DNA from: Blepharisma stoltei ATCC 30299 | Lineage: Eukaryota > Protista > Ciliophora | DNA: 64,000 bases | Reading direction: 5' to 3' | Assembly (NCBI GenBank): GCA_965603825.1 | Contig: CBFDEM010000057.1 | Span: 248,001-312,000 of the forward strand | Shown: positions 7,041 to 57,426 of the stretch, one piece after another | How positions within the stretch are numbered: position 1 is the first letter of the stretch | Layout of the letters: every line of letters starts with the position of its first letter | The notes under the pieces: generated by a model | What the model saw: only the letters and a program-made list of their open reading frames with translations | Databases searched by the model: none | Told to the model about the DNA's origin: nothing | Position numbers and translations under genes: made by a program

Positions 7041-7877
7041 ATGACAATCGACGAAAAGACCTTTAGCACCCTACACGCATTAAAAATCTCAATTTGGGTT
7101 GGTATTTTTGTAGGTACTATCACCTTCGGATGCGGATGTGATAAAATTATCTCAAGTTATACAGCTTCCATTATACCGCTTATAGCAGCTTTTATCATCC
7201 TCCCTATAACAGTTCACATGCTACTCTACCGTGTTTGTCCGAATATGCGAACACTTTCAAAACAAATCATTATTGCTTCTGTATACAACTTGGCCTGCGC
7301 CGCAATTATTTTTGCATTTCTGGGCTGCTTGCTTCTGGACGAAGCAATTGACATACCATGGGCTGCAGTTTTTGCACCAGTATGGTATGGGATGGCAATC
7401 CTCTTATTATTTATAATTTTTATGTTCCCTGGGCTCATTCAAAGCGGTAACAACAGAGCTGCATTTCTGATGTGCACATGGTGGATTGGCGTCATGGCTT
7501 TGACAATCTTGTGGGTTTGTCACCTGGATCATGGAACCCCTAGCTTGTTTATATACTGCTGGATTCCTGTGCTTTGTTCAGTTTTTACTCATATAATTGC
7601 ATATGCGAGAGAAAGAATAATACTTAGAAGAGCAAACCCTGATTTGCCGTTCAAATCGAGAGAATTATTCTGTGTATTTATATTGATACCTTTCAGCTTT
7701 GTGACTATGATGAAACTTTATGTGCTAACATGGCTGCCGGCGTTGTTCTTAATTATCCCGATTGCGAAGCTTATGGTTATCTGGCTGTTTTTGGAAGAGA
7801 AGGCTCACTGGGGTTGGTGCAAGGGCTGTTGCGAAAGTAGAGAAGGGAAAGAGAAAAAATATGAATCAGTTTCTTAA
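7041..7877 (+). CDS. Multi-pass membrane protein, TMEM185/FAM11 (Frag-X-F)-like, paralogue 1
   Basis: About 8 hydrophobic helices with a repeated W..VF.P.W motif (IPWAAVFAPVW). C-terminal YESV. Confidence 0.7.
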   Translation: MTIDEKTFSTLHALKISIWVGIFVGTITFGCGCDKIISSYTASIIPLIAAFIILPITVHMLLYRVCPNMRTLSKQIIIASVYNLACAAIIFAFLGCLLLDEAIDIPWAAVFAPVWYGMAILLLFIIFMFPGLIQSGNNRAAFLMCTWWIGVMALTILWVCHLDHGTPSLFIYCWIPVLCSVFTHIIAYARERIILRRANPDLPFKSRELFCVFILIPFSFVTMMKLYVLTWLPALFLIIPIAKLMVIWLFLEEKAHWGWCKGCCESREGKEKKYESVS

Positions 7878-8222
7878 TTAAGTAGGTAATATTTTAACAT
7901 AAACAGTTTCTATAATTAACAAGATTTATTTGCAATTTATATATTATATAAACGCAAAACTTCTTAATAGAATAACTGAATCTGTCATGTGTTCAGCTTA
8001 TATTTTCAGCAATTAAGTGAATAATTAATAATTTCTCGATATTCTTCATTTCAAAATTTTAAAAGCTTTTTCCAAATTCAGACAGAAAATTAAGCTTTAA
8101 ACTTAAATAATTATCTTAGTCTATCATTATTAAGTATACTGAGCTATGATTCTTAAGTTTTTAATCTTATGCTTTAGAGGCTAAATATGCAAAAAACGAA
8201 TATAAAAGCTTAAAAATTTAAT

Positions 8223-9035
8223 ATGATAATTGTTCAAGGCACACTTGTTACACTTCAAGCTCTGAAACTCGGAATATGGGTATCCTTACTTGTAGGAGTC
8301 CTCACACTAGGCTGTGCATGTGATGAAATCATCCCAAGCTTTGCAGTCTCTATCATTCCATTTATAATTGCTCTCACAATCGTCCCAATTTTGATTCATG
8401 TCTTCCTGAACTTTTTATCTCAAGGTGCAAACTTATTTGCAAAACCAATCTTACTATTCTGGGCCTATGCTATTTCAGTCTCACTTATCGTATTTACGAT
8501 CCTAGGGAGCTTATCACTTGACGGTGTCCTTAACCTCTCACTCACAATTGTTTTCAGCCCTCTTTGGTTCGCACTTGCCTGTTTCTTTCTATTTTCAGTA
8601 TTTATCGCTGAAGTGCTTGTAGAAAATGACTATAAAAGAGTGTCTGTTTTATTATTTACATGGACAATCGCGCTTTACATTTTTTCATTTATGTGGATGG
8701 GGCATATAACCAACAAGTCCCCAGGGATTTTTGCGTTTGTGCTGACTCCTATTTATGTCGCGAATCTGATTCACATAATCATGTATGTAAACGAGCTTGT
8801 GAACATGAAAAGAACTTTAGGGACAGTAAATATCAATACTCAAGAACTGCTGTGCATTTTGATGCTCCCTTGTTTTGCAGCTCTGCTGATGGTTAAAATC
8901 TACACAGCGCCTTGAATCCCTGCTTTGACACTTGTAGGGCAATTTGCTGCAGTTTTGATATTCTGCTTTTATAAAGATGCACAAAGCATATGGGTCAGAA
9001 ATGATAATAAAAACAGTTACGAGACGATTTCTTAA
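8223..9035 (+). CDS. TMEM185-like membrane protein, paralogue 2
   Basis: Colinear with paralogue 1. TGA 8913 aligns to TGG Trp (LTWLPA vs TAP-W-IPA). Ends NSYETIS-TAA. Confidence 0.7.
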
Positions 9036-9114
9036 TTAAGTAATTTATATATTTTTATAAAGGGTAACTTTAATCTAATCTAAGTCTATATGCGTTTTTC
9101 ACTATAAAAAATTT

Positions 9115-9930
9115 ATGACAATAGATTCGGGGAGTATAAGGACACTTCACGCGCTCAAATTGACGACCTGGGTAGCGCTTTTTGTGGGTAGCATCTTATT
9201 CGGGTGTGCTTGTAGCGGCTGAATACCTAGCTACACAGCTTCTGTCGTCCCGATTGCAATCGCTTTAATATTGTTCCCGATTATAGTTAATGTGGCTGTA
9301 AATAGCCTCGATATGTATGTGAAGAGGATTTCTAAACAGATTCTGCTTTCCTGTGCATATAACCTCTCCCTATCATGACTGATTTTTGCATTTTTGGGCT
9401 GCTTACTTTTAGACGAAGCTATCGACATTCCTTGGGTATTTGTGTTCGCGCCAGCTTGGTATGGGTTTGCAATTATCTTTTTGTTCACGGTTTACATGGC
9501 TCCTGGCATGATTCAGAAAAAATATTATAGAGCGCTATTATTGATATTTGCATACTGGGTTGCATTGCTGGTTTTCAGCATTTTGTGGATATGCAACATA
9601 GAGTACGACAATCCTAATAACTTTCTTTATGCATGGATACCTGTTGCCGCAGTGCTTGTTTTGCATTTTGTTACTTATATGAAAGAAAGGATTCAGTATA
9701 GAAAAACTCATCCCAACGAAGGCTTCCATACGACCGAGTTTTTCTATGCTATTCTTTCATTGCTGCAGCTCACTGTTATGCTGACACTCCAAATGGAAGT
9801 TCTTACCTGGGTTCCTTCTTTTGTCTTAACAGCACCACTGGTAAAAGCAATGGTGATTTGGCTTTACCTCGAAGAAAAATCGTATTGGGGTTGGGGACAG
9901 TCTGGAAATAAAGGAAAAGAGTATAAATAA
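9115..9930 (+). CDS. TMEM185-like membrane protein, paralogue 3
   Basis: MTIDSGSIRTLHALK start matches paralogue 1. Two internal TGA read as Trp. LLLDEAIDIPW is shared. Confidence 0.7.
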
Positions 9931-12104: not shown

Positions 12105-13592
12105 TTAAGAAGCCCTACTACCTCTTTGACACTCTAGATGAGAGCCTTTGCCATTGTAAATATATGGTGTTCCAGTTTGAAATATAGACTGTGAGCAGAT
12201 CTGGCAGAGTGTGCAATCAAAGTGATAGTATATATTTTGATAAATATACACAGATTTTCCAGTTATCAATGGATTTCTACAAATTTCGCAGATATAGCAT
12301 TTATAGCATGTTTTATTGCACTTTTCCCAACATTTTTTGCACACTTTGTGGCCGCATGGAAATGTATTAGTAAATTGCTTGAAATTTATTCCCTTACAAA
12401 TCTCACACATCTCTTGAAGAGGTGCTATTTGAAGGCTTTCCTGAGTGCTTAAACTTGAAACCACGCTGCTTGCTGCAGAGGGGTTTTCTTCGTTTTTATT
12501 TTGTCCTGGTTCCCTAGGAAACTTAAAGTTTTTATCTTTGAATTTGTTAGGAATTTTCATTCCACAAGGACAAGAAATTTGGCTTTTAGTGAGTTGTTTT
12601 TTATCAATTTTGTCCTGTATGCACAATTTGCAATGAACTTTGTGGCATGGATAAAAATATAGCAGACTGCTAGAGTCATGAGAGCAATTCCCAATTCTTT
12701 TAATTCAAGATTTTATTCGTTTAAGACAAGCGATTTTTGGAGCAGGGTTCTGAGAACTTAGCTTTGAAATTTCCTGGTCAAGCTGAAGTTTGTTGGCTTC
12801 AGGCATCCAGCCAACTTGTGAAGTAACGATCTGGGCCAAAATTTCTATTAAAGCAGACTGATCAATTGCAGTCTGCACTGGTGCCACTTCTGGTTTCATA
12901 GGAATAGGCATGGGAGCAGGTAAAGATTGGCTCTGATCCGAATATGTAAAAGGTAAATCATCTAAATTAACTGTTTGACCATAATCATGAAGATTTTCTT
13001 TAAAATGCACCAGTAGTGACCAAGAATTTTGGCTGTTCTGGTCATATAAAATACTAATATTTAGTTCGGGATTTGGGTTCGGTGTTCTTGCTATGAACGG
13101 ATTTGGTGAGTTATATGAATATATGCTGATAGTGAATTTCAATATTTTGGTGAGTGCATTAAAGATGTATTCTTCGTCTTTCAGGACTTCTTTTCCATAT
13201 ATAACTTCATTGGAATATTGAGTTTTAAATTCATTCCTTAGAGTAGTTGAAACGATTATCCGGAAAGCATGGTCAAAGCTTTCTTCAACGGACTCTTTCA
13301 GAAGGTAATTCTTAATGTCAGCTGAGGAAAATGATTCTGTGTATTTCATAAATTCTTTTAGAAATTTGTAGACTTCTTCGTTTATTGATCCTTGGACTCT
13401 GTCCAAGGCTTTATTTAGCTCATTAAGAGTTTTGCCAGCTACGAACGTTCCTTTCAATCTTGATAATTGTAACAAAATCCCGAAATAAACCACTGAATAG
13501 AAGCTTGGCTTTTCAAAGTTCAAATGGATGGAAGATTGGAAGGCTTGAAGGTTTGGCTCTCCTAGATGTACTTCTATGAATCTAGCTTTCAT
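12105..13592 (-). CDS. Otubain-fold (probably inactive) protein with C-terminal RING-like and LIM-like zinc fingers, paralogue 1 (495 aa)
   Basis: TGA 12705=W joins two track ORFs. N-terminal KPSFYSVVYFG / ALTKILKFTISIY / ISILY..NSWSLL resemble otubain motifs. Cys/His clusters CSH..PCHKVHCKLC..CPCG, CEIC..CGHKVCKKC, CEIC..HFDC..CQIC..HLEC. Confidence 0.65.
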
Positions 13593-13893
13593 TTTAGAAA
13601 GAAAAATAAATGCTTATATGTGTAATGAACTAAATTTAAAGCCTAATCATTTTACTATTTAATACATTTAGCATGTGAAGGAATAATTGCAAAGATCTTT
13701 ATAATGCTAAAAATAATGAAAAGCTAAAGAGAGAGCTACAGGGTAATAATTGCTTTTCAATCTGACATTTAAGATGCCTAAAAATTCTTTATAAAATAAC
13801 GAAGAAATATAAACATTTTTAAAGATAAATTAGCGCTTCAATAGACGACCTCAAAGAAATCTTATTTTAGTTTTTTTGATAATATTTAAATAA

Positions 13894-15411
13894 TTAAGAA
13901 ATCCTATTTCCTCGTTGACACTCTAAATGAATGCCTCTGCTGTTATAAACACTTGCCGTTCCTTGCTTGAAAATAGACTGCGAGCAGATTTGGCACATTG
14001 TACATTCAGAGTGATAGTATTTTAATCTGTAAATATACGCAGGCTTCCGACTCAGACTAGACTTGCATATTTCGCAAGTGTTGCATTTGTAGCATATTTG
14101 ATTACAATTTGCCCAGCATATTTGACACGCAGCATGGGAGCATTCAAATGTATTGGTTAGTTGTTTTGGAAAGACGTTCTTACAAATATCACACATAGCC
14201 TGCAAAGAAGGCACTTGGATGCTTTCCTGCGCAACTGGCATATTTCTCATAACACTTGCTGGTCGTTTCCGCCCTTTCTTTTTGTTTCCTGCAGAGTCTT
14301 CACTAAAACTTTGGTTTTTGGTTGGATTTTCACGTTGATTTGCGAAAAAATAAATGCGAGAATTATTTTGTGTTTTTGGTTCTGCTTGATCCTCAGAAAA
14401 TTTGAATATTTTGTCACGAAATTTCGTTGGAACTGCTATTCCACAAGAGCATAAAAAATTATTTTTGGGGATTTTTTCGTTGTCAATTTTTGCTTGCATG
14501 CACAGCCTACAATGAAATTTGAGGCATGAATGGAAATAAAGGAGAGTTTTTTGATCGTGAGGACATTTCTCAACTTTATTGCTTCATTCAATTAGTGGTT
14601 CAAGGTAAGGGATTCTTGACTGAGGGTTTTGAGAATTTAACCTCGAAATTTCCTCATCAAGTTGTACTTTACTGTCTTCAGAAATTCAGCTGACATGAGA
14701 ATTGATAATATTGGTCAAAGCTATTATTAAGTTTGAGTGATCATTTATAGGCTGCTTTGGTGGCACATATGTAAAAGGTAATTCATTCAAATCTACAGAT
14801 TGCCCTATATCAAACAGATTTTCTTTGAAATGCACTAGAAGTGATCAAGAATTTTGACTACTTTGGTTATATAAAATATTAACATTCAGCTGTGGATCTG
14901 ATTTTGAGGTTCTAATTACCTGTGGATTTGGGGAGTCATAAGAGTATATACAGAGAGTTAAGTCAAATGCTTTTGCGAACACCATGAAGATATGATTTTC
15001 ATTCTTTTGTACTTCTTTCCCCGATAAAATATCTTTAGAAAATCGAGCTTTAGATTTGCTATTGAGATTCTTTGATACAAAATCTCTTAGACCATTATCA
15101 AAGTATCTTTCACAAAATTCTCTGAGGGCATAATTCTTGATGTCCAGTGCTGAGTAGTTTTCTGTATATTTCGCGAAGTCTGTTAAAACATTGTTATCAT
15201 TGGTAACTCCTTGAATTTCACCCAATGCATTATATAGCAAATTAAGAGTTTTGCGAGCCATTGGTGTTTCTTTCATTCTTGCCAATTGCAACAAAATCCC
15301 TAAATACACCACTGAATAGAAGCTTGCCTTTTGCATGTCTAATTGGATGGTAGAATGAAATTCTTGTAGATTTGGGTGATTTAATTGTACCTCAATGAAC
15401 TTAGCTTCCAT
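13894..15411 (-). CDS. Otubain-fold/zinc-finger protein, paralogue 2 (505 aa)
   Basis: Colinear with paralogue 1. Three TGA read as Trp; two align to TGG in paralogue 1 (NSW, VGW/VSW). Confidence 0.65.
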
Positions 15412-23380: not shown

Positions 23381-23671
23381 CTAAGTGTAAAAGACCAATA
23401 CAAATAAGACAACCAAAACCACCATAAGAATCATAATTGTGCATAAAGTCTTGCTATCGTTGGTTTTCATCAATTTCGCAAGTTTTTTCATGACGAAGTT
23501 CATTTTTTCAATATTGTCATCAACTTCACTATCGAGCTTTCTCAGCATGACGTTTTGATCTTGAAGTTCTTGATTTATAGTATTAGCTTGAATGTAAAGT
23601 CTTTTAGCGATTTCAGAAATTTCATCAAGCTGCTCATCTTGCTGGGCAATGAAGCCTAATTGATTTGACAT
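23381..23671 (-). CDS. Minimal Qc-SNARE (syntaxin-6/8/Bet1-like SNARE motif + C-terminal TM)
   Basis: QQDEQLDEIS..L...A..INQELQDQN.ML..LD.EVD heptads and a hydrophobic tail anchor. Confidence 0.85.
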   Translation of the reverse strand: MSNQLGFIAQQDEQLDEISEIAKRLYIQANTINQELQDQNVMLRKLDSEVDDNIEKMNFVMKKLAKLMKTNDSKTLCTIMILMVVLVVLFVLVFYT

Positions 23672-23730: not shown

Positions 23731-24009
23731 TTAAGTATAAAAAACAACAATAAAGAGAATAATCATACCTGCTAATAGTATCACTGAGGTACAGAATGTC
23801 CGAACAATATTTGATTTTAAAAATTTGAAGGTCTTCTTAAGAATGAACCGAAATTTGTTGTCTTTGTCGTAGATTATGGTATCCAGAGATCTGATTGTTA
23901 TGTTTTGATCTTGATTGGCCGAGTTTGCGATATACAATCTATTTTGAACTTCAGACTCATCATCTGGCTGCTCATCTTGGTGGCCTGCAATTCCTAATTC
24001 TTTTGACAT
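23731..24009 (-). CDS. Degenerate Qc-SNARE paralogue
   Basis: Colinear with 23381..23671 (QDEQ, RLYI, DQN, VFYT end), but with Pro substitution and deletions in the coil. Confidence 0.7.
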   Translation of the reverse strand: MSKELGIAGHQDEQPDDESEVQNRLYIANSANQDQNITIRSLDTIIYDKDNKFRFILKKTFKFLKSNIVRTFCTSVILLAGMIILFIVVFYT

Positions 24010-24792: not shown

Positions 24793-24898
24793 TACTATTT
24801 TTATATGACTAAAATTAAAAGGAATAGGCATTCTAAATAAAGCTTTCTAAATGCATGGAAAGGATAAAAATTTTAGCAAATTGCATAAATAATGATGC

Positions 24899-25123
24899 TT
24901 AATTATTTGTTTCACCTGATTTTGCCATTTCGTTGCTGGCTGAATCTTCCCCAAAAATATATTGATTGTAAAATTCTGGGTTTTTTAGTTTTTCTTTTTG
25001 CATGTATTTTGCAAGTCAAAATGTAAAGAAAAATCCTCCTACTCCTAAAACTGTTAGGATCACTTCAAACCTTGCATTAAATAAATGATTTTTCTTTGTA
25101 AGTGGGGCTTGTGGTCTCTTCAT
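24899..25123 (-). CDS. 74-aa single-pass membrane microprotein; absent from the ORF track
   Basis: MKRPQAPLTKKNHLFNARFE-VILTVLGVGGFFFTF-W-LA-KYMQKEKLKNPEFYNQYIFGED...; ATG follows an A-rich leader; TAA at 24899. Confidence 0.55.
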
Positions 25124-25671
25124 TTTAATTCAATTATTTTAATTATAAAAATCACTAAGATAGATGCCTTAGGAATACCTAAATTTTTAATCTAAGACTA
25201 AAGTGCGACTTAAATCAGCAAGGAAACTTGCTCAAAATGATTTATTTTACTATAGACCTACAAATAGAAATGGCAATGTATGCAATTTTAATATTTTAAA
25301 GTATTTATAATTATAAAATATAATTATATAAAATAATTAAAATTATTAATTGAACTTTTCTATCAAAATGGATTATAAAGATTAAGATGTCAGAAAATAC
25401 CCTATAGCGCAAACTCTGGCAAGTTAACTAGATGCCATATTTGATCTAATCTTCATATCCTATTTAGCTCCTCAGCATTGAAATTTTATTTCTTTTAATA
25501 AAGCGAGGATTATTATCAACAATTGAGGGAAAAGAACCGCTAAAAAGCTAATATCAATTATTAGAGCTACCAATTAAAATGAATTAATTAATTTAGCAAC
25601 GCTTTTTTATTCATTTATCATTCCTAAATTAAACCTTTAATAAGAAATCGACAATATTTTATAAAAATAAT

Positions 25672-25947
25672 ATGGCACTCTTTTATTATAATGGTCAAAG
25701 CGGGCCTCTGGGCGATGTAAGAGACGGTGGTGGATATCCAGTTAGCTCACTTGGGAAGAGTTTTGCAAGATATACCACGTATGCAGGGCAACGTCCTCAA
25801 AGAAATACTCTCTGCCTATATCATGTTTCAATTGGAAGTTTCGATCTCCCTAACTGAGATATTCTATTTGCGGGTAATCTTAATTTCGGAGGAAATGCAA
25901 CTATTGGAAACGTTTCTTTTGGGTTAAATCCTAATCTCCTCGCATAA
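25672..25947 (+). CDS. Orphan 91-aa Gly/Asn-rich microprotein, copy A
   Basis: MALFYYNGQSGPLGDVRDGGGYPVSSLGKSFARYTTYAGQRPQRNTLCLYHVSIGSFDLPN-W-DILFAGNLNFGGNATIGNVSFGLNPNLLA, ending in TAATAA. Frame is preserved between copies (only a 3-nt indel). Confidence 0.8.
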
Positions 25948-26088
25948 TAAAGCGAATAACTAATTAGCTTTTTAGCCATATTGATTCTATAAAATGGGAA
26001 AAATCAAGCAAGCATGTTCTAGTTGTTTTTGGTGGATCATTTAAAAGATTTAAAACACAATTTTAGGTGTTACGCTTAACTAAATTAC

Positions 26089-26330
26089 TTAATCCTGATA
26101 AATATAACTGTTTAAGGTTTTGGCCCTTTCAGCTAATGCATAAGGTGAGACATTTTTTTAATTCTTCAGCTGATGAGTCCCTAGGTAGCCAATCAAGCTC
26201 TGATATAAGTATCCAGAATTTTTAATTGTCCTTGTTAGATTTTGATTATAATTCACATAAGTGATTCCAAACCTGATGCTCTATCCATCAGTCCATTCGA
26301 AATTATCTAGCAGTGACCATAAGAAGTATC
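26089..26330 (-). pseudogene. GH1 beta-glucosidase 3' fragment
   Basis: Copy of the last ~80 codons of 27032..28612 (YFLWSLLDNFEWTDG...YIYQD), with no 5' part and a 1-bp deletion near 26170 (cagctgatg vs cagcatgatg). Confidence 0.85.
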
Positions 26331-26391
26331 ATAATGATATAATGGTGACGTCGTGATAATTTCTCATTTAATCTCATCTTCAAGCCTGCTC

Positions 26392-27273
26392 ATCTTCTAT
26401 CCTATTTAGCTGCTTAGCATTGAATTTTATTTCTTTTAATAAACCGAGGCTTATTCTCAACTTTGAGGGCAAAGAACTGCTAAAAAAACTGATATCAATT
26501 ATTAGAGTTACCAATTAAAATGAGTTAATTAATTTAGCAACGCTTTTTTACTCATTTATTATTCCCAAATTATACCTTTAATAAGAAATCGACAATGTTT
26601 TATAAAAATAATATGGCACTCTTTTATTATAATGGTCAAAGCGGGCCTCTGGGCGATGTAAGAGACGGTGGTGGATATCCAGTTAGCTCACTTGGGAAGA
26701 GTTTTGCAAGATATACTACATATGAAGGGCATCGTCCTCAAAGAAATACTCTCTGCCTGGTTAGTGCTTCAACTGGAGGAGTGTGTCTCCCTAACTGAGA
26801 TGTTCTAGTTGGGGGTAATGTTACTTTCGGTGGAAATGTTTCTCTGTTAAACCTTACTATAGGGGGGTTTAATCCCAATCTTCTCGCATAATAAGCGAAT
26901 AACTAATTAGCTTTTTAGCCATATTGATTCTATAAAATGTGAAAAATCAAGCAAGCATGCTCTGTTATATTTGGGTGGATCATTTAAAAGATTTAAAACA
27001 CAATTTTAGGTATTAAGCTTAACTAAATTACTTAATCCTGATAAATATAACTGTTTAAGGTTTTGGCCCTTTCAGCTAATGCATAAGGTGAGACATTTTT
27101 TAATTCTTCAGCATGATGAGTCCCTAGGTATCCAATCAAGCTCTGATATAAGTATCCAGAATTTTTAATCGTCCTTGTTAGATTTTGATTATAATTCACA
27201 TAAGTGATACCAAACCTGACGCTGTATCCATCAGTCCATTCGAAATTATCTAGCAGTGACCATAAGAAGTATC
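26392..27273 (+). repeat. Tandem segmental duplication, copy B
   Basis: Counterpart of 25449..26330; its GH1 part belongs to the intact gene. Confidence 0.9.
26613..26891 (+). CDS. Orphan 92-aa Gly/Asn-rich microprotein, copy B
   Basis: MALFYYNGQ...RYTTYEGHRPQRNTLCLVSASTGGVCLPN-W-DVLVGGNVTFGGNVSLLNLTIGGFNPNLLA, ending in TAATAA. Confidence 0.8.
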
Positions 27274-28612
27274 CTCTGACCTTGACCTTATCGTTAACAA
27301 TTGCATCAACCATATTCATAACGTGATTATAAACATAATCCATTCTAAACGTATCGTTCAATGCTTGTGCTTCCGGCATATCATTTTCTCCTGGGCAGCT
27401 TACTCCATTTTCGAAGATGTAAATATCTGGATCGTTATATCTGACTTTAATCCAGTTCAAAAGAGCTCTAAGCCCTGGAGGATACACATTTAGCCATGAA
27501 GATTGCGCAAAAGGCCCGATTAGGTGTCCTGTTTTATTGTATGGGCTTCCAGTATATCTCCCATCATTCCCATAGTTGTCGCCAGGTGTTCCTGTCCAAT
27601 GGACATATCCACTTGCGTAGTAATTCAATCCTAAAAAGTCATAAGAACCTTTCAGCATATTTGATTGTTCAGTCGTGAATGTAGGAAGTCTATTTCCTGT
27701 AATGAGCTCACTCATTTCTGTAGGGTATCTTCCAAATGCCTGAGGATCAGCAAACCAGCCATACTGGAATGCTAGTGAATATTGAACTGCCTTATAGTCA
27801 TCCTCATCAGATGTATCCCATGGCAAATTGTAGCCACTGTTGATAGTCATCCCGATTTTGCCTTTTTGGGTTTTTTGGTATTTATTTCTGTAAGTTTGAA
27901 CTGCAAGACCGTGAGCTAGCAATGCGTTGTGAGCTGCTATGTAAGGCTCAGTTGAAGAGTTGCCACCTCCACCTACTTGTTGACACCAGTCACCCCAGCT
28001 TGGAGAACATCTTCCTGGGGCGTGAGTCCCAACTCCGTATCCAATCCATGTGAAAGTTTGGATTTCGTTCATGGTAAGCCAATATTTGACCTTGTTTCCA
28101 AAGGTGCTAAAACAGAAATCTGCATAAGCATTGAATTTATTTGCGACATCTGGATCGAGCCAAGTACTTTGAGCTGTTAAATTATTGAAGGTTTGTGGCA
28201 AATCCCAGTGATAAAGAGTGACATAAGGCTGAATCCCAGCTGCAAGCAATGCATCTAGGAGGGTGTTGTAAAATTGGACTCCAGCTTGGTTTACATTACT
28301 GGTAAGCCCATTTGGAAGGAGGCGAGTCCAGGAAAGAGAAACTCTAAAGTTTTTCACACCAAGCTGCTGAAGTAATTTGATATCTGAAGGATATCTGTCA
28401 TAGAAATCATCTGCAATCTGCGCAGTCTCATTGTCATAAATTCTACCTGGGAAATTTTGAAAGTAATCCCAGATTGATGGCCCACGCCCAGAGACATTTC
28501 ACGCTCCTTCGACTTGAAAAGCAGCTGTAGCTGTTCCCCATGCAAAGTCTGAAGGAAGAACAGCAGCGCATGATAGACCAATAAACAGCAAGTAAACAAT
28601 CAGCTTGCCCAT
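27032..28612 (-). CDS. Secreted glycoside hydrolase family 1 beta-glucosidase (GH1-a)
   Basis: Signal peptide, FAWGTATAAFQVEGA-W(TGA 28499), TLYHWDLP, acid/base TMNEI, nucleophile IFENG, WSLLDNFEW. Confidence 0.95.
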
Positions 28613-28878
28613 TTTTATACCAAATCTTATTTACTTAGTCTTTAAAGGACTATTTCTAGCCCCATGCATCGAATATTCAACAAATAACTAAAATCTAACT
28701 ATAAGTTTATGATTTAATTGCGTTTAAAATTAATTCTCTTCATTTTCTTATAAGATTAAAATTTATAAATATAAGCTCGGCAGTTAACTCGATAAAGTGC
28801 CAAATCATTTCATCTAAAAAGATTTCATTAATTAAAGCAAGAAAAACATTAACGCCTCCAGTAATTAAAATATTTTAT

Positions 28879-30453
28879 TTATGATAAAGATAGCTGCTCA
28901 AGCTTTTTCATCTCAATAAGTGAGTATGGAGAAACATTTTTTAATTCTTCTGTATGATGAGTTCCTAAATATCCAATCAAGCTTTGATATAGATATGCTG
29001 AGTTTTTAATAGCCCTTGTAAGATTTTGATTATAATTCACATAAGTGATTCCAAACCTTATGCTAAACCCTTGAGTCCATTCGAAGTTATCTAGCAGTGA
29101 CCATAAGAAATATCCTTTAACTCTTACCTTATCATTGACTACTGCGTCCACCATATTCAATACATGATTATAAATATAGTTCATTCGAAAAGTATCGTTC
29201 AATGCTTGTGCTTCTGGCATGTCGTTTTCTCCTGGAACACTGACACCATTCTCGAAAATGTATATATCAGGATCATTGTATCTGGCTTTAATCCAGTTCA
29301 AAAGCATTCTAAGGCCAGGAGGATATACATTAAGCCAAGTAGACTCAGCAAAAGGACCAATTAGATGCCCTGTTTTATTGTATGGGCTTCCAGTATATCT
29401 CCCATCATTTTGATAATTGTCACCAGGAATGCCTGTCCAATGGACATATCCGCTCGCATAGTAATTTAAGCCCAAAAAGTCATAAGAGCCTTTTAGAAGA
29501 GCTGATTGTTCTGGTGTAAAAGTAGGAAGTCTATTACCTGTAATGAGCTCACTCATTTCTGTAGGATATCTTCCAAATACTTGAGGGTCTGCAAACCACC
29601 CATACTGGAAAGCTATCGAATATTGAACTGCCTTATAATCATCCTCATCTGATGAGTCCCATGGTAAATTGAAGCCACTATTAATTGTCATCCCAATTTT
29701 ACCTTTTTGAGTTTTTTGATAATTTTTTCTGTAAGTTTGGACTGCAGCGGCATGGGCCAATAAAGCGTTGTGGGCAACAAGATAAGGCTCTGTAGAAGAA
29801 TTTCCTCCTCCTCCAACTTGCTGGCACCAGTCTCCAAAGCTTGGACTGCATCTTCCAGGAGCTGCAGATCCGACCCCATATCCACCCCAAGCAATACTTT
29901 CAATTTCATTCAGCGTTAGCCAGTACTTAACCTTATTTCCAAAAGTCTTAAAGCAAAAGTCTGCATATGCATTGAATTTATTCACGATATCCGGATCAAG
30001 CCATGTACTTTGAGCTGTCAAATTGTTGAAGGCTTGTGGTAAATCCCAGTGATAAAGAGTGACATATGGCTGAATCCCAGCTAAAAGTAGCGCATCAATA
30101 AGATTGTTATAAAATTGCACACCTGCTTGATTTACATTACTCACAAGTCCATTTGGGAGTAAGCGTGTCCAGGAAAACGAAAGCCTGAAGTTTTTGATTC
30201 CAAGCTGTTGAAGAATTTTTATATCTGAGGGATATCTATCATAAAAATCGTCAGCAACATGAGCAGTCTCGTTATTATAAATTCTATTAGGGAAATCTTG
30301 AAAGAAATCCCAAATGCATGGTCCACGTCCTGAAACATTTCATGCTCCTTCAACTTGAAAAGCTGCAGTAGCTGCACCCCAAGCAAAGTCTGAAGGTAGA
30401 ACTGAAGCACATGAAAAGCCTATAAATAGTAAGAAAGCAAAGAACTTACTCAT
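28879..30453 (-). CDS. Secreted GH1 beta-glucosidase (GH1-b)
   Basis: ATG 30453 MSKFFAFLLFIGFSCA; EGA-W(TGA); TLNEI; IFENG; WSLLDNFEW. Confidence 0.95.
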
Positions 30454-30485
30454 ATTTACTTGCCAGAGCAGATATTAAATTTAAA

Positions 30486-32060
30486 TTATGGAGATAAAAA
30501 TTTAGGAGATATTATTGGTTTTTCAGTAATTGCATTTATCGAGGCATTTTGAGCTTCCTCAAAACTATGAGTTCCTAAGTAACCAATTAAACTCTGATAC
30601 AAATACCCTGAATTTTTAATTGCTCTAGTCAAGTTTTGGCTATAATTCACATATGTGATTCCAAATCTCGTATTGAACCCATCCGCCCATTCAAAGTTAT
30701 CTATAAGTGACCACAAGAAATATCCCTTTACCCTAACTCCATCATTTACAATAGCATCAACCATATTCATGATATGGTTATATATATAATCTATCCGAAA
30801 CGTGTCATTCAAAGCTTCTTCTTCAGACATTTGACTTTCTCCAGGATCGCTAACTCCATTCTCCATCACATAAATTTCATGATCCCCATATCTATTTTTG
30901 ATTCAATTCAAAATTCCTCTAATTCCTTGAGGGTAAACATTAAGCCATGAAGATTGTGCTGTCGGTCCAATTAAATGCCCAGTTTTATTATAAGGGCTGA
31001 CATTATATCTCCCATCATTTCAATAATTGTCTCCAATCTCTCCTGTTCATTGAGCATAATCTGTAGTATAGTAATTCAGCCCTAAATAGTCAAAAGAGCC
31101 TTTCAATAAAGCACTTTGTTCAGGAGTGAATTCTGGGAGTCGGTTTCCTGTAATCAGCTCAGTCATTTCTTCAGGATACCTTCCAAATACAACTGGATCT
31201 CCTATCCAGCCATATGAAAAAGCGATTGCAGTTTGTGCTGCTTTATAATCATCAGGATTTGAAGAGTCCCATGGCAAATGAAAGCGAGTATTAATGGTTA
31301 AGCCGATTTTCCCTTTTTGCAAGGCTTGATATTTTTGGCGATAAGTCTGTACAGCAAGACCATGAGCTAATAAGGCATGATGAGCTACAATATAAGGCTC
31401 AGTCGAAGTGTTTCCTCCCCCTCCTACTTGCTCACACCATGAGCCTACACTTGGACTGCATCTTCCTGGCGCAGCAATTCCCCAGCCATACCCTTGCCAT
31501 GCGAAACTCATAATTTCGTTCATCGTCACCCAATGCTTTACTTTAGCTCCAAAAGTACTGAAACAAAAATCAGCATAAGCATTAAATTTATTCGGCATAT
31601 CAGGATCAAGCCATGTGCTTTGAGCTGTCAAATTATTGAATACTTGTGGGAGATCCCAATGATAAAGAGTTACATAAGGCTCAATTTTGGCAGCGAGTAA
31701 TGCATCAAAGAGATCGTTATAAAACTGGATCCCAGCAGAATTTGGGTTTTCGGGAGTCCCAGCTGGAAGCACACGAGTCCAAGAAATGGAGAGCCTTAGG
31801 TTGTGTATGCCTAATTGCTGAAGGATTTTTATATCTTCGGGGTATCTGTCGTAAAAATCATCAGCAATGTGAGCTGTCTCATTGTCGTAAATTCGGCCTG
31901 GAAAATCTTGGAAATAATCCCAAATACTTACCCCACGTCCTGATATGTTCCAAGCGCCTTCTACTTGAAATGCTGCAATTGCAGTACCCCATGCAAAATC
32001 TGGGGGAAGAACTGAGGCAAATGTCAGGCCTAATAGCACGAGTTGAAAAAATGTTCCCAT
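30486..32060 (-). CDS. Secreted GH1 beta-glucosidase (GH1-c)
   Basis: Track ORFs 31047..32060 and 30486..30869 join through TGA=W codons. TMNEI; VMENG; WSLIDNFEW. Confidence 0.95.
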
Positions 32061-32344
32061 ATTATAAATGATACAATAAATAATACAAAAAAGAGTTACT
32101 TCTTACTAGCCACGTAGACAAGAGTATACTTACAGTTGTTTATTAAAAAATTGGATTAAAGATACATATTAATTTATAGTTAAAACGCTTTTTCCCATTT
32201 AATTATTGATATAAGTCAAATTAATTCTTACTTCTCTAAATAGATTTCATTGTTTTTTATTTTAAAAAGAATAAAGGTTAAATAAGATTAATTTTAAATA
32301 TTAATTTAAGAACCTTTACAATAGTTTTACGATACGATTATTAC

Positions 32345-33922
32345 TTAATCCTCTAGAAGATTATGCAATTGTTTGCCTCTTTCAGCAAGTGAATAAGGAG
32401 ACAGCTTTTTAACTTCTTCAACATGATGGGTTCCTAAATAGCCAATTAAGCTCTGATAAAGATACCCTGAGTTCTTAACAGTTCTTGTCAGGTTATTGTT
32501 GTAATCCACATAAGTGAGCCCGAATCTGACATTATAGCCATCAGTCCACTCAAAGTTGTCTAATAATGACCATACGAAGTATCCTTTAACCCTAACTCCA
32601 TCATTTACAACTGCATCTACCATATTCATAATATGGTTATATAAATAATCCATACGGAAAGTGTCGTTCAAGGCTTGAGCTTCAGGGACAGTATTTTCTC
32701 CAGGGCAGCTTACTCCGTTCTCAAGAACATAGATGTCAGGATTGTTGTATCTATTTTTAACCCAGTTCAAAAGGCCTCTAAATCCAGGGGCATATACATT
32801 TAGCCAGCCTGAATCTGCATATGGGCCGATAAGATGTCCAGTTGAATTGTAAGGACTTTGGCTACATCTGCAATCATTTCCGAAGTTATCACCAGGCACT
32901 CCTGTATAGTGAGCATATTGACTGTAGTAATAATTGACTCCTAAGAAATCATAAGACCCTTTCAACATCATTGATTGTTCTGTCGTGAATGTAGGAAGTC
33001 TATTTCCTGTAATGAGTGAGCTCATTTCTTCTGGATATCTTCCAAAGACTTGAGGATCAGCAAACCACCCATATTGGAAAGCGACAGAAACATCTGCTGA
33101 TTTGTAGTCTTCTGGTTCTGATGTATTAGAAGGATAGTAAAATGCACTACTGATGGTCATCCCGATTTTGCCTTTTTGGGTTGGTTGGTAATATTTTCTG
33201 TAAGTCTGAACTGCAAGGCCGTGAGCTAGCAATGCGTTGTGAGCTGCTAGGTAAGGCTCAGTTGAAGAATTGCCACCTCCACCTACTTGTTGGCACCAGT
33301 CACCCCAATTTGGAGAGCATCTTCCTGGGGCGTGGGTTCCGACGCCATATCCAATCCATGTGAAAGTTTGGATTTCGTTCATGGTGATCCAGTATTTAAC
33401 CTTGTTTCCAAAAGTCTTGAAGCAAAAGTCTGCATAAGCATTGAATTTATTTGCGACATCTGGGTCTAGCCATGTGCTTTGGGCTGTAAAGTTATTGAAG
33501 GTTTGAGGTAAATCCCAATGGAAAAGAGTTACAAAAGGCTGAATTCCAGCTGCAAGCAATGCATCGAACAGATTATTGTAAAATTGAACACCAGCTTGGT
33601 TTACGTTGGTTACCAGTCCATTTGGAAGCAGACGAGTCCAGGAAAGAGAAACTCTGAAGTTTTTGATTCCTAATTGTTGGAGGATTTTAATGTCTGATGG
33701 GTATCTGTCATAGAAATCGTCTGCAACATGGCCAGTCTCGTTGTTGTAAATACGGCCTGGGAAATTTTGGAAATAATCCCAGATACATTGCCCACGTCCT
33801 GAAACGTTTCAAGCGCCTTCAACTTGAAAAGCAGCTGTGGCTGTGCCCCATGCAAAATCTCTTGGCAGGACAGCTCCATAGGCGATGCCAAGGAATAAAA
33901 TGAGAAAGTATTCTTTCACCAT
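32345..33922 (-). CDS. Secreted GH1 beta-glucosidase (GH1-d)
   Basis: ATG 33922 MVKEYFLILFLGIAYG; EGA-W(TGA); TMNEI; VLENG. Confidence 0.95.
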
Positions 33923-34537
33923 ATTATTTATCTCTGATGATGCTGTAGTGATGGATTTTTATTTAAATTTAAGGGCCAATTATAATTGTTTAAGGACCTT
34001 CAATCATTTTAAAAATTATTGATGCAAAGATATGAAAAATTAAAAATAATTATATAAAATCGTATACCTGGAATTTTATCTCGGAACAGATGTTGGTGAT
34101 GGTTAATAGGATAAAGTGATTGTTAAGCTAAATCAGGGAGCTTTATTTCTAATTCTTATAAGAATTTTATTTTTATTGTAGAGTTTTTGATGAGCATATA
34201 GAGAAAGTGCTGCTATTTTAATTAAGGACATTAATGGAATAAGTAGGTCTTAAATTGCACAGAAGTAGGACAGAAATGTCTACTTTTTAAATAATAGTTC
34301 TTTCAATATGATATTTTTATGATTAAATGAATCTTTATATTCAATTTAAAATAAAAACTAAAGAAATTTTTGATATTTACTAGTTTTTTTTATGCCTTTT
34401 ATCAAAATGATTTGAAATAATAAGCTAGCAAAAAAAGTTAGGCGCAAGTAATTTACATATATCGAAGCATGGGAGAATTTTACAAAATGTTATACCAAAA
34501 TTTAATAATTATTGTAATTTTAATCCAAAGATTAATA

Positions 34538-36100
34538 TTATTTACTCCTAGCTTTACCAATGTCAACAAGATTTGCTGGTAATATCTGCTTAACCTCTTC
34601 TAAAGAACTTGAGCCTAGTTTTTCAAGCAGAGCTTTGTACATATATCCAGAATTTTTTACTGTTCTTGTTAAATTTCCTGCATAATCTACATAAGTAATC
34701 CCAAACTTCCCATCAAAACCATCAGCCCACTCAAAGTTATCTATAAGTGACCACAAGAAATATCCTTTAACTTTAATCTTATCCAAGACAATGGCATCAA
34801 TCATGCTCATGATATATTCATGTACATAGTTTACTCTGCATGCATCATTTAGACCTGTCTCGATTGAAGCGTTATGCTCTCCCCAACAACTGATCCCATT
34901 TTCAAGTATATAAATATCAGGATCATTATATCTTTTTTTTATCCAGTTCAAATGATCTCTAAATCCAGGCGCATACGCATTGACCCACCAAGAGTTTGTG
35001 AATGGGCCTATTAAATTTCCTGTTTTATTAAAAGCACTGGTTTTAATTCTTGGATCGCTAATATAATTAATCCCTGGAATTCCAGTGTGTTGTGCATACT
35101 GGGTTGTATAATAATTAAATCCTAAAAAGTCATAAGAGCCTTTTAGCATTTCACTTTCGCTTTCAGTGAAATTCGGGAGTCTGTTACCAGTAATTATAGA
35201 TGACATTTCCTCAGGATATCTTCCGAAGGCTATTGGATCAGTTAGCCAGCCAAATTGAAAAGCTACTGCTCTGTGAGCTGCGTTAATATCATCTATATTT
35301 TGGTTATCATAAGGCAGAGCAAATGTGCTACTAGATGCCATTCCAATTTTTCCTCCTTGAAGCTTTTGATATTTTTCCCTATATGTTTTAACAGCGTAAC
35401 CATGAGCCAAAAAAGCATGATGAGCTACTATATAAGGCTCAGTGCTTGAATTTCCGCCTCCTCCTATTTCCTTACACCATGAACCAAAATTTGGGCTGCA
35501 TCTCCCTGGAGCATGAAGCCCAGTTCCATAGCCTACCCAAGCCATGACCTTGATTTCGTTAAAAGTGATCCAAAATTTCACCTGATCTCCAAAATTTTTA
35601 AAGCAAAAATCTGCATAATCATTGAATTTAAATACAATGTCCTTGTTAAGCCAAGTGCTTTTGTCAGTAAAATTATTAAAAGTCTGAGGTAAATCCCAAT
35701 GATAAAGAGTAACATATGGAGTAATCCCTGCATTTAGTAAAGCACCAAATAAATTCCGATAGAACTTCACGCCTTCTGGATTTGGAGAGTCGATTAATCC
35801 TGTAGGAAGAATTCGTGGCCAAGAAATAGAAAGCCTCAAATGTTTGATTCCTAGCTTTTTCATTAGCTCAATATCCTCTGGATATCTGTGATAAAAATCA
35901 GCTGCCACTTTTGCATTATAGTTATTTCTGATGCGTCCAGGGAACTCCTGGAAGTAATCCCACATACTCATACCTTTTCCAGACTCATTCCATGCACCTT
36001 CAACTTGAAAAGCAGCAATTCCTGTACCCCATGCGAAATCTTCAGGAAATTGAGTTGCGAAAGTAGCAAGAATCAAAATTGGGGAAAGAAAAATTATCAT
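34538..36100 (-). CDS. Secreted GH1 beta-glucosidase (GH1-e, most divergent)
   Basis: Uninterrupted 520-aa ORF; signal peptide; TFNEI; ILENG. Confidence 0.95.
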   Translation of the reverse strand: MIIFLSPILILATFATQFPEDFAWGTGIAAFQVEGAWNESGKGMSMWDYFQEFPGRIRNNYNAKVAADFYHRYPEDIELMKKLGIKHLRLSISWPRILPTGLIDSPNPEGVKFYRNLFGALLNAGITPYVTLYHWDLPQTFNNFTDKSTWLNKDIVFKFNDYADFCFKNFGDQVKFWITFNEIKVMAWVGYGTGLHAPGRCSPNFGSWCKEIGGGGNSSTEPYIVAHHAFLAHGYAVKTYREKYQKLQGGKIGMASSSTFALPYDNQNIDDINAAHRAVAFQFGWLTDPIAFGRYPEEMSSIITGNRLPNFTESESEMLKGSYDFLGFNYYTTQYAQHTGIPGINYISDPRIKTSAFNKTGNLIGPFTNSWWVNAYAPGFRDHLNWIKKRYNDPDIYILENGISCWGEHNASIETGLNDACRVNYVHEYIMSMIDAIVLDKIKVKGYFLWSLIDNFEWADGFDGKFGITYVDYAGNLTRTVKNSGYMYKALLEKLGSSSLEEVKQILPANLVDIGKARSK

Positions 36101-50298: not shown

Positions 50299-53200
50299 AT
50301 GGACTTATCCTTAAAAATTTTTTTCATCACAAACCTCTACTTAGTTTCCTGTCTTGACCCATCAACTGTTGCTATGGCAATTAACTTCGGTACAAGCAAT
50401 TCATATACATCAACTTTTGGGTTTGTTTATTCTCCAGACACCTCTATTACTTCGACAGCTCAATATGCTGAAACAACAGCAAAATCTATAGGAAGAACAC
50501 AAAATCCAACTATATATCAAACTGCCACGTCAAGTACTGAAGGCCCATCCTGAGGAGTTCAATTTACCATTTCAAATGATGGGACTTACGTTTTGATTCT
50601 TCAATTCGCAGAAATAATTTATACAGAATCGAATAAAAGAGTATTTTCAGTAGGATTAGGAACAAATTACATTGCAAAAGCAGACTTAGATTTATATTTA
50701 GAAGCAGGAGCTTTTAATGCTTATGATATGTTTATCCAATTTGACGTCATTGGTGGAGCTGCATATATAAATGGCAGCCCTATAATGGATCCTTACGAAA
50801 GTTTCACGATTTACTTTGTTAACTCAGGTATAGGAAATCCATCAATTTCAGCATTCATTTTGATCAAGGGAGATTGCACTGTTGCTGATAATTGCAATAT
50901 GTGCTATGACAAAAATTGCGCTGATTGTGATAAATCTACAGCTACGTGTAAAGCCTGCATTTCAAACATGACGCTTATCAATGGAAAATGCCAGTGCCCA
51001 TCAAATAAATATTATAATTCTGTATCCAAATCATGCGAAATTTGTGATAATTTATGCGAATATTGTGAAGGCTCAACAAAATTTTTATGTGACTCTTGCA
51101 ATCCGCTATACTACCGAGTTTCCAACATGTGTTTAAGGAACTGCCCATACGGATTTTCAAAGGGATGCTATGAATCTACTTCTATTTCAATAAATACACA
51201 TTTTGATGGAGATTTTATAGGAACTTATAATGGGATATTTCGGACAGGATCAAGCGAAAATAGCTATTACTTTTTCAATTCCCCAGAAGCCACAGACCCA
51301 ATTCCGGCCAAAAATAGAGGGCTTTATTTTTCTGGAGAAAGCTATTTAGAATCATATTTCGACATTTATTTTTCATTTAATTTTTCTGTGGGATTTTGGG
51401 TATGACTAGCACCTATTTCAAAATCCGTAGTCTTTATGAAGCATGGCAAAGATAATAAACTCAGAATTTTGAGAAATGGAATGATAGTAATATATTTAGA
51501 AAATGAATTAGAGCAAACCACTTTTGTTTCACTGAGTAATACGAACCCAAAAAATGAAGAATGGGTTTATCTTTCTTATACAGTTTCTTATTCATCTAAA
51601 GCAACTACTATCAGCTCATATTTAAATAATGCTGTCAAATTAAGTGCATCAAAAGATGGATATATTTATAGGGATGCTTCTACAGACAACACAATTATCT
51701 TAGGTAAATCTGTTAGTTCAAACCTTGACGGCTTCATTTATGCCTTCTATCTTTGGAACACTGCAGTGAATGATTTCAGTGAGGTTTATTCGAACGACTT
51801 GTGCGGAAATGGAAAAATAGCGAACTGTCTTTGGTCCTGCAATTTGGGAGAGTGAATAGATAATGGTGTTAAAGCTTCTTGTGACACTTCATGCTCTAAT
51901 GGATGCACAAGGAAGGAGTCTTGCAGTATTTGTTATGATCCTTTGTGCAAGGTTTGCAGAAGCTTTGGTGAAGATTCGTGTGATGAATGCATAACAAATG
52001 CTTCAGGCTCTCCATGCAGTTGCGATTATAGTTATACAGTTTCTGAGACTGGCTTTGAATGCGTCAGCTGCTCATATGGCTGCGCATCATGTGCTAGCGT
52101 TAATCCTTATGACTGCTTTTCATGCATATCTGGGTATTTTCTATTTGAAACTTGGTGTCTAATTGATAACCCTTATAATTATACACAAAATTCATGTATT
52201 GTAAGCTACGAGTTTACTAAAATTTCAAATGTCCAATATGATTCTGTGAATTCTTATCCAATCTATATGGGAAATTCTGATTCTTTCTATCCTGACTACG
52301 ATTCAAAAGATCCTTGGATTTTACCCTATCGAGGTTTGTATTTTGGTGGTTACTCAGTAGCGTCGCTTCCTCAAAAAAATGATACCTCAAATGGGATTTT
52401 GCTTGGTTTGAACCACACAATAGATATATGATTGATGATTTCTCAGGATAACTATGATGGGGTTGCATTTTCTGTTTACACAGATTACTCTTATCTGATA
52501 ATGATTAGTGCAGTGCAGAGTGACCCATCTTCTTATAAATATGAAATTTACTATAATTTAACAAATATTGATGGGCAATCAACGAGTTTGTTTTTCTTGC
52601 CGAGTCAATTATACTCTTTCAATACCTGGCAAAGAGTTATCTTGTCATATTTTTATGAGTCAGGCTCAAATGTAAAATTATTTGTAAATGACCAAATGGT
52701 CGAATCTCAAATATATGCAGACTATTTTTATAATGAGAATTATAATTATAAAGTTGATTTAGGGAATTGAGATTTTAAAAGGAAATTTGTTGGATATGTG
52801 TATTCTTTAAAAATATATAATTATGCATTTGAATCTGTCAAGCCATGGTCGACTTCATCATGCGGATACCCATACTGTACTGAGAACAATGAAGCCTTAA
52901 TAAACTGCAAACCTTTGGAATTTTATGATATTTCTTCAAAATCTTGTAGTTATTGTAGCAGCTACTGCTTATTTGGATGTGCAAGAGGAAGTGATATTTG
53001 CAATCTTCATCAAAATCCGCTTTGTCAATCTTATGAAAATTTGAAATTCAATATCTGTGAAACATGCAAATCAAATGCGAATAACATCCCCCCTTGTAAT
53101 TGTGCTAAAAATTTGATATACGATACTGTATCAGAAACTTGCAAGTGCAGCGATGGCTCTCAGCCGGTTAATGATCAATGCTCTTCTTGCATTAGATATC

Positions 53201-56200: not shown

Positions 56201-57426
56201 AATTGGAAGAAGAGGCGAGGAAAAAGATGAAAGGAATACCTAAAAAAGTAGAAAAAATTATCAGCGAATTCAATGATTTATCAGAAATTGAGAATAAGCC
56301 TGAAAAAATGATGGAAAATGCTCATTTAGAAACAAATAAGAAGTCTTTCATTTGCTTCTGTAAGAAGAAAAAGAAACTTGAAGATTGCAATGCTGACTCT
56401 AGAGCTAAGGGATCAAAAAAATCATGTTGGCCATTCTGTAAAAAGAGAAACCAAGCTAAAAGAAACCAGGATAGTGAAATTATGAAATCTTATCAGGAAG
56501 TAATAAAGCTTTCAGAAAAAGCTAGCTTTTGGAAATGCTGTAAAAAAACACAAAAAAATAAAAATAATATAGATCAAAGTGAGGCATATTGCAGCCCTGA
56601 CGAAGTCTATGTTTATAGTTTTACTGACGGAACAAATTCTGAGAGCACTGAAACTGAAGAAACTAAAGAAACTAAAATGGGAAAGTGGTTGGGCATCATC
56701 TCAGAAAAGCATGAGCTCTTTAATATTCTTTTCACAAAAGTTCCTCAGCACCCAAGTCTTTGCAGAATAACTCTATATTTTTTAGTTTTGATAGGTCAGA
56801 TGTTTTTTATTGGTATGTTCTACGAAACAACTTCCACATCAACTGAAACAGTCATAACAAACTCAACAAATTCCACATCTTCTGACTACAGCTCAGAAGG
56901 CTTTTCAATCGATTACAGCTGGCATGACTTTTGGATTATGGTTTGATCCTCTTTATTGATGATAATCGTAACTTCAACTCTCAGCAAACTCTTTACTGAG
57001 CAAGAGATCACTGATCAAATGACAGGACTGCAATATATAAAAATTAAGAGGCAAAACAAAATAAAAAGATGGATAGGATTATTTTTAGCGTGGGGTATTA
57101 TGTTCTATTTCTTGTGAAGTATTGCTTTATATTCTATTCAGTTTGATGAGGATATTAGTAGAGTTTGGGTTCTTAATACAGGTATAGGCTATACGGTTAA
57201 TATTTTGTTTACGTCTGTGATTAAGATAGCAATTACTGCATATATAACTATGAAATTATTAGATCTTATTGAAAAATATAAAAAGAAAAAAACTAAGGAA
57301 AACAATGAAGCTGAGATTCATATAACAGATTTCCAGCAGCCTACAACTGAAACTAGAACTTCTACTGAAAAAAATTAACTAGACCTGAGCGATAAATCAT
57401 ACTCAATTTTAAATAAAAAAGATTAA
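50299..57426 (+). CDS. Giant cell-surface receptor: signal peptide - malectin - furin-like Cys repeats / two LamG(ConA)-like domains - REJ - GPS/GAIN - multi-TM (polycystin-1-like), 2375 aa
   Basis: One frame with TGA=W from ATG 50299 to TAA 57426. Malectin AINFG, LILQFAEI..KRVFSV..DLDLY..AG. REJ IDASSSYDP..SFS-W-RC and NSPPHSG..NPGEG..G-W-IDE.DYP. GPS CAYLN...T-W-STLGC...CNCTHFTTFA. TM helices follow. Confidence 0.85.

Follow-up and report, generated by a model that had tools for sequence, protein, structure and literature searches.

The stretch of DNA considered here, 64,000 nucleotides (nt) of contig 57 of the Blepharisma stoltei macronuclear assembly (positions 248001-312000; hereafter the window), contains two adjacent genes for small proteins, A and B, which lie in the two copies of a tandem duplication and which are identical over their first 34 codons and sharply diverged over the rest (Table 1). 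A preliminary description of the pair took this layout for a diversifying system of recognition or effector proteins. The layout is, on balance, probably the outcome of patchy gene conversion between older duplicates with a substitution-tolerant tail, as we discuss below. The assembly, which is the genome searched throughout, spans 41.46 Mb in 64 contigs. UGA is read as tryptophan (Trp) in this genome, introns are tiny, and 25,711 genes have been annotated (PMC9942806).

Table 1. Genes, duplicated units and tracts at the A/B locus, with positions in the window
Feature	Position	Strand	Description
Gene A	25672-25947	+	91 codons and TAA, 91 amino acids (aa); database protein P0002 (91 aa)
Gene B	26613-26891	+	92 codons and TAA, 92 aa from the ATG at 26613; database model P0003 has 98 aa
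Identical tract	25657-25775 (counterpart 26598-26716)	+	119-120 nt: last 15 nt of the 5' leader and codons 1-34; candidate recent gene-conversion tract
Divergence island	25776-25938 in A (counterpart 26717-26882 in B)	+	Codons 35-91; 37 substitutions and one 3-nt indel
Duplication unit, copy 1	~25437-26330		Upstream DNA, gene A, 3' flank, truncated GH1 3' end
Duplication unit, copy 2	~26364-27280		Upstream DNA, gene B, 3' flank, 3' end of GH1-1
GH1 beta-glucosidase 3' fragment	26080-26330	-	Pseudogene piece of ~250 nt, brought along by the duplication
GH1-1, intact GH1 beta-glucosidase	27032-28612	-	Pfam PF00232, E=4.5e-117; 3' end within duplication copy 2
GH1 array	27032-36100	-	Five full-length genes, 520-526 aa (TGA=Trp), hydrophobic N-termini; GH1-1 is the first

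A small family of B. stoltei proteins

Reading TGA as Trp brings the summed length of the open reading frames (ORFs) of the window to about 18,800 aa, compared with about 11,000 otherwise, and the long ORFs gained in this way include one kinesin and five full-length GH1 glycosidases. A and B each contain a single in-frame TGA (25855-25857 and 26796-26798, respectively), in both cases within an LPNWD motif and read as Trp. The genes had been cut at this codon in the ORF track, as was suspected at the outset, and the full proteins have about 91 aa. A six-frame search of the whole genome yielded exactly one further member, paralogue C, on contig 33 (L003:1501-1788, 95 aa; database model P0001, 100 aa), which is 53% identical to A and B over the first 60 residues (E=1.9e-14) and carries TGG where they carry TGA. 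In the N-terminal half, the nonsynonymous divergence (dN) of A-C and B-C is 0.37-0.39 with synonymous divergence (dS) saturated (>1.5), which indicates long-term purifying selection on that half. The C-terminal half is more diverged from paralogue C (dN 0.70-0.84), with LP.WD, GG, N, G, P and L kept. On these comparisons A, B and C appear to be real coding genes rather than chance ORFs. The three proteins have a pI of about 8-9, one to three cysteines and a combined Gly, Asn, Ser and Thr content of 36-40%; they have no membrane segment and, as first described, no signal peptide (maximum KD(8) 0.47 in A and B).

The start of the database model for B lies at an upstream ATG (26595-26597), which is owed to an A>G difference at 26597 and which, within the pair, occurs in copy B only. 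Codons for F-Y-K directly precede the start methionine in A, B and paralogue C (25654-25671, 26595-26612 and L003:1486-1500, respectively), and an in-frame upstream ATG is present in copy B and paralogue C, with ATA at that site in copy A. Either the copies do not share one true start, or TTTTATAAAA has been conserved as a motif of the leader or promoter. An antisense ORF of 109 aa across gene A (25686-26015, minus strand), open when TGA is read as Trp, was rejected as a gene: copy B has a 1-nt indel that puts it out of frame, and Gly/Asn codon composition probably accounts for it.

The search for relatives elsewhere upheld the initial view of an orphan family: it has three members, all in B. 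stoltei, with no outside relative in any database searched. Word-indexed searches of 5.8 billion proteins, in which paralogue C, the head of A and the full three-sequence profile with tails served as queries, returned only the three B. stoltei proteins, each of which forms a singleton cluster. An exhaustive HMMER search of 1.84 billion representatives with an N-terminal profile of 61 positions gave no credible relative, degenerate patterns found nothing in viral contigs, metagenomes or prokaryotic genomes, and the ESM Atlas offered no usable match; unannotated small genes of other heterotrichs would escape these searches. The top foreign HMMER matches (P0004, P0005 and P0010) were rejected as perfect-repeat or apparently wrong-frame translations whose summed scores are inflated by repetition, and they stand as a warning about E-values against repeat proteins. 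Nothing was found in Pfam at E<=10 with whole proteins, N-terminal pieces or tails, and a profile search of the PDB gave a lone chance match, to Cas10 (E=0.69). AlphaFold2 with the three-sequence alignment produced unusable models, with predicted local distance difference test (pLDDT) scores of 36.1 for A and 40.9 for paralogue C. From their sequences, A, B and C appear to form an uncharacterised, Blepharisma-restricted family of three genes for small (91-95 aa), soluble, Gly/Asn/Ser-rich proteins. It is a genuine family with a conserved N-terminal half and no assignable fold, and offers a modest target for the cataloguing of ciliate-specific small proteins.

Mosaic divergence between the two copies

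Pairwise alignment of the two duplication units gives a mean column identity of 93%, and the direct repeat has a start-to-start spacing of 941-943 nt, with repeat families D1, D2, D4, D5 and D7 spaced 941-944 nt. The repeat itself is therefore as first reported, a tandem duplication of about 0.9 kb that had been taken to be recent. Homology stops at 26330/27280, within GH1 coding sequence. The GH1 fragment so captured is interrupted by a stop codon and a frame shift; it matches the 3' end of GH1-1 at 98.0% identity and the other four GH1 genes at 73-83%.

The two copies differ very unevenly along their length. The upstream non-coding DNA differs at 17/214 to 20/200 positions (8-10%). It gives way to the identical tract, which has a probability of 6e-5 at the flank rate; codons 1-34 show no difference in 102 nt, and residues 1-37 are the same, exactly as initially reported. 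The island that follows differs at 37 of 171 positions (22-23%; 77% identity by BLAST), rising to 32 of 126 (25%) over codons 50-91. From residue 38 onward the 22 codons with replacements, the one codon indel and the six purely synonymous codons of the preliminary description were all recovered. Past the stop codon the copies are again nearly identical, with one 1-nt indel followed by 48 identical nt (about 45 had been noted), and the remaining ~390 nt downstream, the GH1 fragment included, hold about 12 events (about 3%). Upstream and downstream flanks differ from each other as well (20/200 versus about 12/390, p=8e-4). That the C-terminal coding half has diverged more than the DNA around it, another early claim, is clear from replacement sites in the island (26/94) compared with the intergenic flanks (27/345, p=2.6e-6). 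Such a spread of three or four 'ages' over 900 bp is a sign of gene conversion acting repeatedly and in patches, not of a single clock. Scans of positions 24800-27400 against Rfam and for tandem repeats found nothing relevant, so that the identical tract is not accounted for by a known RNA, nor the tail pattern by a repeat at the DNA level.

The silent sites of the island are what distinguish age from selection on the protein. They differ at 9 of 43 positions, compared with about 12 of 390 in the downstream flank (p=5e-5) and 0 of 23 in the 5' coding sequence (p=0.02), and their divergence is compatible with that of the upstream region (p=0.066). Even the anchors that are identical at the protein level (RPQRNTLCL, FGGN and NPNLLA) bear silent differences. 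Selection on a protein does not raise silent divergence, and an older coalescence of the segment does; the island is therefore read as older than its surroundings, and the contrast between head and tail as coming largely from uneven homogenisation between the copies. The 37 substitutions fall 14:10:13 over codon positions 1, 2 and 3, and their spectrum is ordinary, with all 12 types represented (12 transitions and 25 transversions). A diversity-generating retroelement target was rejected, the differences not being adenine-specific. No third source for either version of the island occurs anywhere in the macronuclear genome, and a model that invokes an ectopic donor is thus left, within that genome, without a visible one.

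Origin of the divergent tail

The account that we consider somewhat better than even is that A and B are functional genes and form an older tandem duplicate pair under patchy gene conversion, with a tail that tolerates substitution. An unequal tandem duplication of about 0.9 kb, which also took in the 3' end of the neighbouring GH1 gene, would have made the pair, and the copies would then have swapped sequence in patches by gene conversion. The 5' leader and the first 34 codons would have been homogenised last (0%), and the 3' flank and GH1 fragment somewhat earlier (about 3%), with the upstream DNA at 8-10%; the 171 nt of the last 57 codons would have escaped homogenisation, and their divergence would be the oldest of all (dS about 0.22). 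The preliminary description had itself set against its proposal an old duplication whose 5' part and flanks were later converted, and this scenario now fits better. We infer conversion as the origin of the mosaic from these differences in age. At the island positions common to paralogue C (P.RNTLCL, LP.WD, GG and.P..L) only silent changes are found, and between these fixed positions change is free, mostly among similar residues, with an overall dN/dS of about 1. The conserved N-terminal ~49 residues would then be the functional core, and the tail a substitution-tolerant, presumably beta-prone extension through which the protein may self-associate. The pattern resembles the concerted evolution of young tandem duplicates, as occurs generally in multigene families, in which near-identical stretches lie beside a sharply diverged one that conversion has spared: adjacent A/B segments differ significantly, and silent and replacement sites are both raised in the island. 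It differs in having two copies only and a very short island (171 nt), with conversion inferred from one genome. Most likely, an uncharacterised and lineage-restricted protein shows evolution of an ordinary kind here.

Several observations weigh against the conversion account. Three separate conversion tracts must all have spared one and the same 171 nt, whose end falls within a few bases of the stop codon; selection that keeps the two tails unlike would explain such a coincidence more readily. The island has more replacement divergence (26/94) than even the most diverged flank, the upstream region (20/200, p=2e-4), and for this reason some adaptive or relaxed acceleration between the anchors may have contributed. 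The counts are also small (6-9 silent differences), and the age of the duplication and the direction of change are judged within one genome.

A rival proposal is that, after a recent duplication, positive selection drove the C-terminal replacements toward different specificities of recognition or self-assembly; we regard it as possible though doubtful. It would account for replacement divergence 3-10 times that of the flanks, for a frame that is kept, the in-frame 3-nt indel included, and for the retention of positions conserved in the family. Its quantitative prediction is less well served. Estimates by the method of Nei and Gojobori (NG86) give dN 0.259 and dS 0.244 from codon 35 to the end (ratio 1.06, binomial p=1.0), and dN 0.344 and dS 0.217 from codon 50 to the end, where the favourable ratio of 1.59 does not differ from 1 (binomial p=0.54). 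Pairwise maximum-likelihood (ML) estimates for the island run from 0.58 to 1.60 according to the codon-frequency model, with p>=0.21 in all likelihood-ratio tests (LRTs); two of the six free-omega fits stayed at their starting values, with a small negative LRT statistic, and the range of estimates together with NG86 was therefore relied on. The diversifying selection originally proposed is thus unsupported, dN/dS lying at 0.6-1.6 and never significantly apart from 1, and the silent sites of the island are raised as much as its replacement sites, which selection on the protein does not predict. The replacements are mostly conservative: 14 of 22 score 0 or more in BLOSUM62, compared with 46% expected for random single-step replacements (p=0.07). 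The term 'hypervariable' accordingly overstates a divergence that is otherwise real. The retained frame is uninformative, since a frame would stay open after 37 random substitutions with a probability of 0.52. With paralogue C as outgroup, unique replacements number 7 in A and 1-2 in B, an asymmetry that would suit the proposal but is not significant (p=0.07-0.18). Nor is there a repertoire on which a diversifying system could draw, for the 41-Mb genome holds two young copies and one old paralogue, with no partner or receptor gene near the pair.

The excess of polarised changes in A, its dN/dS of about 1 with B, the flat distribution of differences over codon positions and its position beside a dead GH1 fragment would equally suit a decaying gene, in which one copy, most likely A, drifts unconstrained toward a pseudogene while conversion from B keeps its 5' half intact. 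A nevertheless retains an open frame, an in-frame indel and all tail positions conserved in the family; it differs at 7 of 26 positions where B and C agree and at 15 of 31 elsewhere, a trend toward constraint (p=0.11); and drift alone cannot lift the island above neutral flank divergence. Decay is therefore unlikely. Hardly more probable is that the tail is a self-templating beta segment, a solenoid rung or amyloid-like element that sets co-assembly, with selection rejecting conversions that would homogenise it; A and B would then constitute a two-allele module with a new, ciliate-only fold. The tails of A and B do contain two to three G-G-N-x-[ST]-hydrophobic units. The 5-6-residue periodicity once ascribed to them does not reach significance, however (lowest p=0.075 in A and 0.18 in B, by class autocorrelation at lags 5 and 6), and the tail of paralogue C has none (lag 6, p=0.68), which makes the Gly/Asn 'ladder' a trait of the young pair and not of the family. 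The units recall the hexapeptide left-handed beta-helix (PF00132) and the amyloid motifs HET-s, PP and BASS. The tails differ from the former in having no Pfam match at E<=10 and no significant periodicity, and in being too short to form a helix alone, and they differ from amyloid signalling pairs in that no motif is shared with a neighbouring NLR-type or effector gene. A literature search for amyloid signalling in ciliates gave nothing relevant.

Two further proposals concern the nature of the protein itself. The family might derive from one to two blades of bacterial Reg_prop/Y_Y_Y propellers, perhaps by horizontal transfer, and form a small oligomerising propeller fragment. Apart from artefacts, the exhaustive HMMER search matched only three Reg_prop proteins, at E-values of 8e-5 to 9e-4 that sum 6-8 blades each; their blades show the pattern GGG..GKSF..YTT..G...N.[VL] that is found at about residues 19-59 of the family, and hhalign gives a probability of 74% (P=2.7e-5, 31 columns). 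These matches were, however, picked out after the fact among 1.8 billion proteins, and summed scores are inflated by repeats; a hidden Markov model of the blade gives A, B and C only 6-9 bits, the family profile matches no Reg_prop chain of solved structure at E<=10, no Reg_prop protein was found in the B. stoltei genome, Pfam has no match and AlphaFold2 predicts no fold (pLDDT 36-41). The likeness to the Reg_prop (PF07494)/Y_Y_Y sensor propellers of Bacteroidota thus consists of the GGG..GKSF..YTT..G...N motif in single blades of three proteins, and A, B and C differ from them in being eukaryotic, at most two blade lengths long, and devoid of sensor or kinase modules. We consider this derivation improbable and the similarity a weak lead rather than a result.

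Conopeptide and other venom-type precursor genes have a conserved signal or pro region and conserved untranslated regions (UTRs) around a hypervariable mature region, and A and B, too, have a conserved 5' part and 3' UTR around a fast-changing coding segment. In accord with this layout, a processed-peptide precursor, toxin-like or akin to the ribosomally synthesised and post-translationally modified peptides (RiPPs), would have the invariant N-terminus as its leader, the variable middle as its core and the conserved C-terminal NPNLLA as its follower. Layout is all that recommends it. A and B lack a signal peptide or any hydrophobic segment, their 1-3 cysteines form no framework, and the family has no match in Pfam; the pair is flanked by GH1 and SNARE-like genes, with no modifying enzyme, protease or transporter nearby; and the 'leader' is conserved in paralogue C (about 53% identity) in the manner of a protein domain. 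Unlike conopeptides, A and B belong to a small family of cytosolic ciliate proteins in which dN/dS does not exceed 1. A precursor is accordingly very improbable. For the beta-solenoid, amyloid, RiPP and toxin-precursor classes as a whole, all of them suggested in the preliminary description, no positive evidence emerged (no Pfam match, pLDDT 36 and 41, no NLR-like or enzyme partner).

The value of the analysis is mostly corrective, in that a conserved head and a variable tail in two young duplicates can mimic a diversity system. The pair also provides a small, clean example of a probable gene-conversion mosaic in a ciliate macronuclear genome.

Genes around the family members

To the right of the pair lies the GH1 array, whose five intact genes are old duplicates under strong purifying selection (dS >1.2, dN/dS 0.06-0.16). 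To the left are two tandem genes for small, tail-anchored SNARE-like proteins and one gene without assignment. Paralogue C is surrounded by unrelated genes, none of them GH1. No other enzyme, NLR-like gene or transporter accompanies any of the three family members; within about 10 kb of the pair the only enzymes are those of the GH1 family, in agreement with the early statement that no modifying enzyme is nearby.

The two small genes on the left (23381-23671 and 23731-24009, minus strand) encode proteins of 96 and 92 aa, both with a membrane anchor at the C-terminus; the first has sub-threshold matches (E about 1e-5) to SNARE and Use1. The two have the look of a duplicated, tail-anchored SNARE-like pair. 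Further tandem paralogues in the window comprise three genes of ~270 aa with similar N-termini (7041-9930, plus strand), two of ~500 aa (12105-15411, minus strand) and two very large ones of 2359 and >1874 aa (50299-64000, plus strand). With several such sets in the window, tandem duplication appears to be common in this region.

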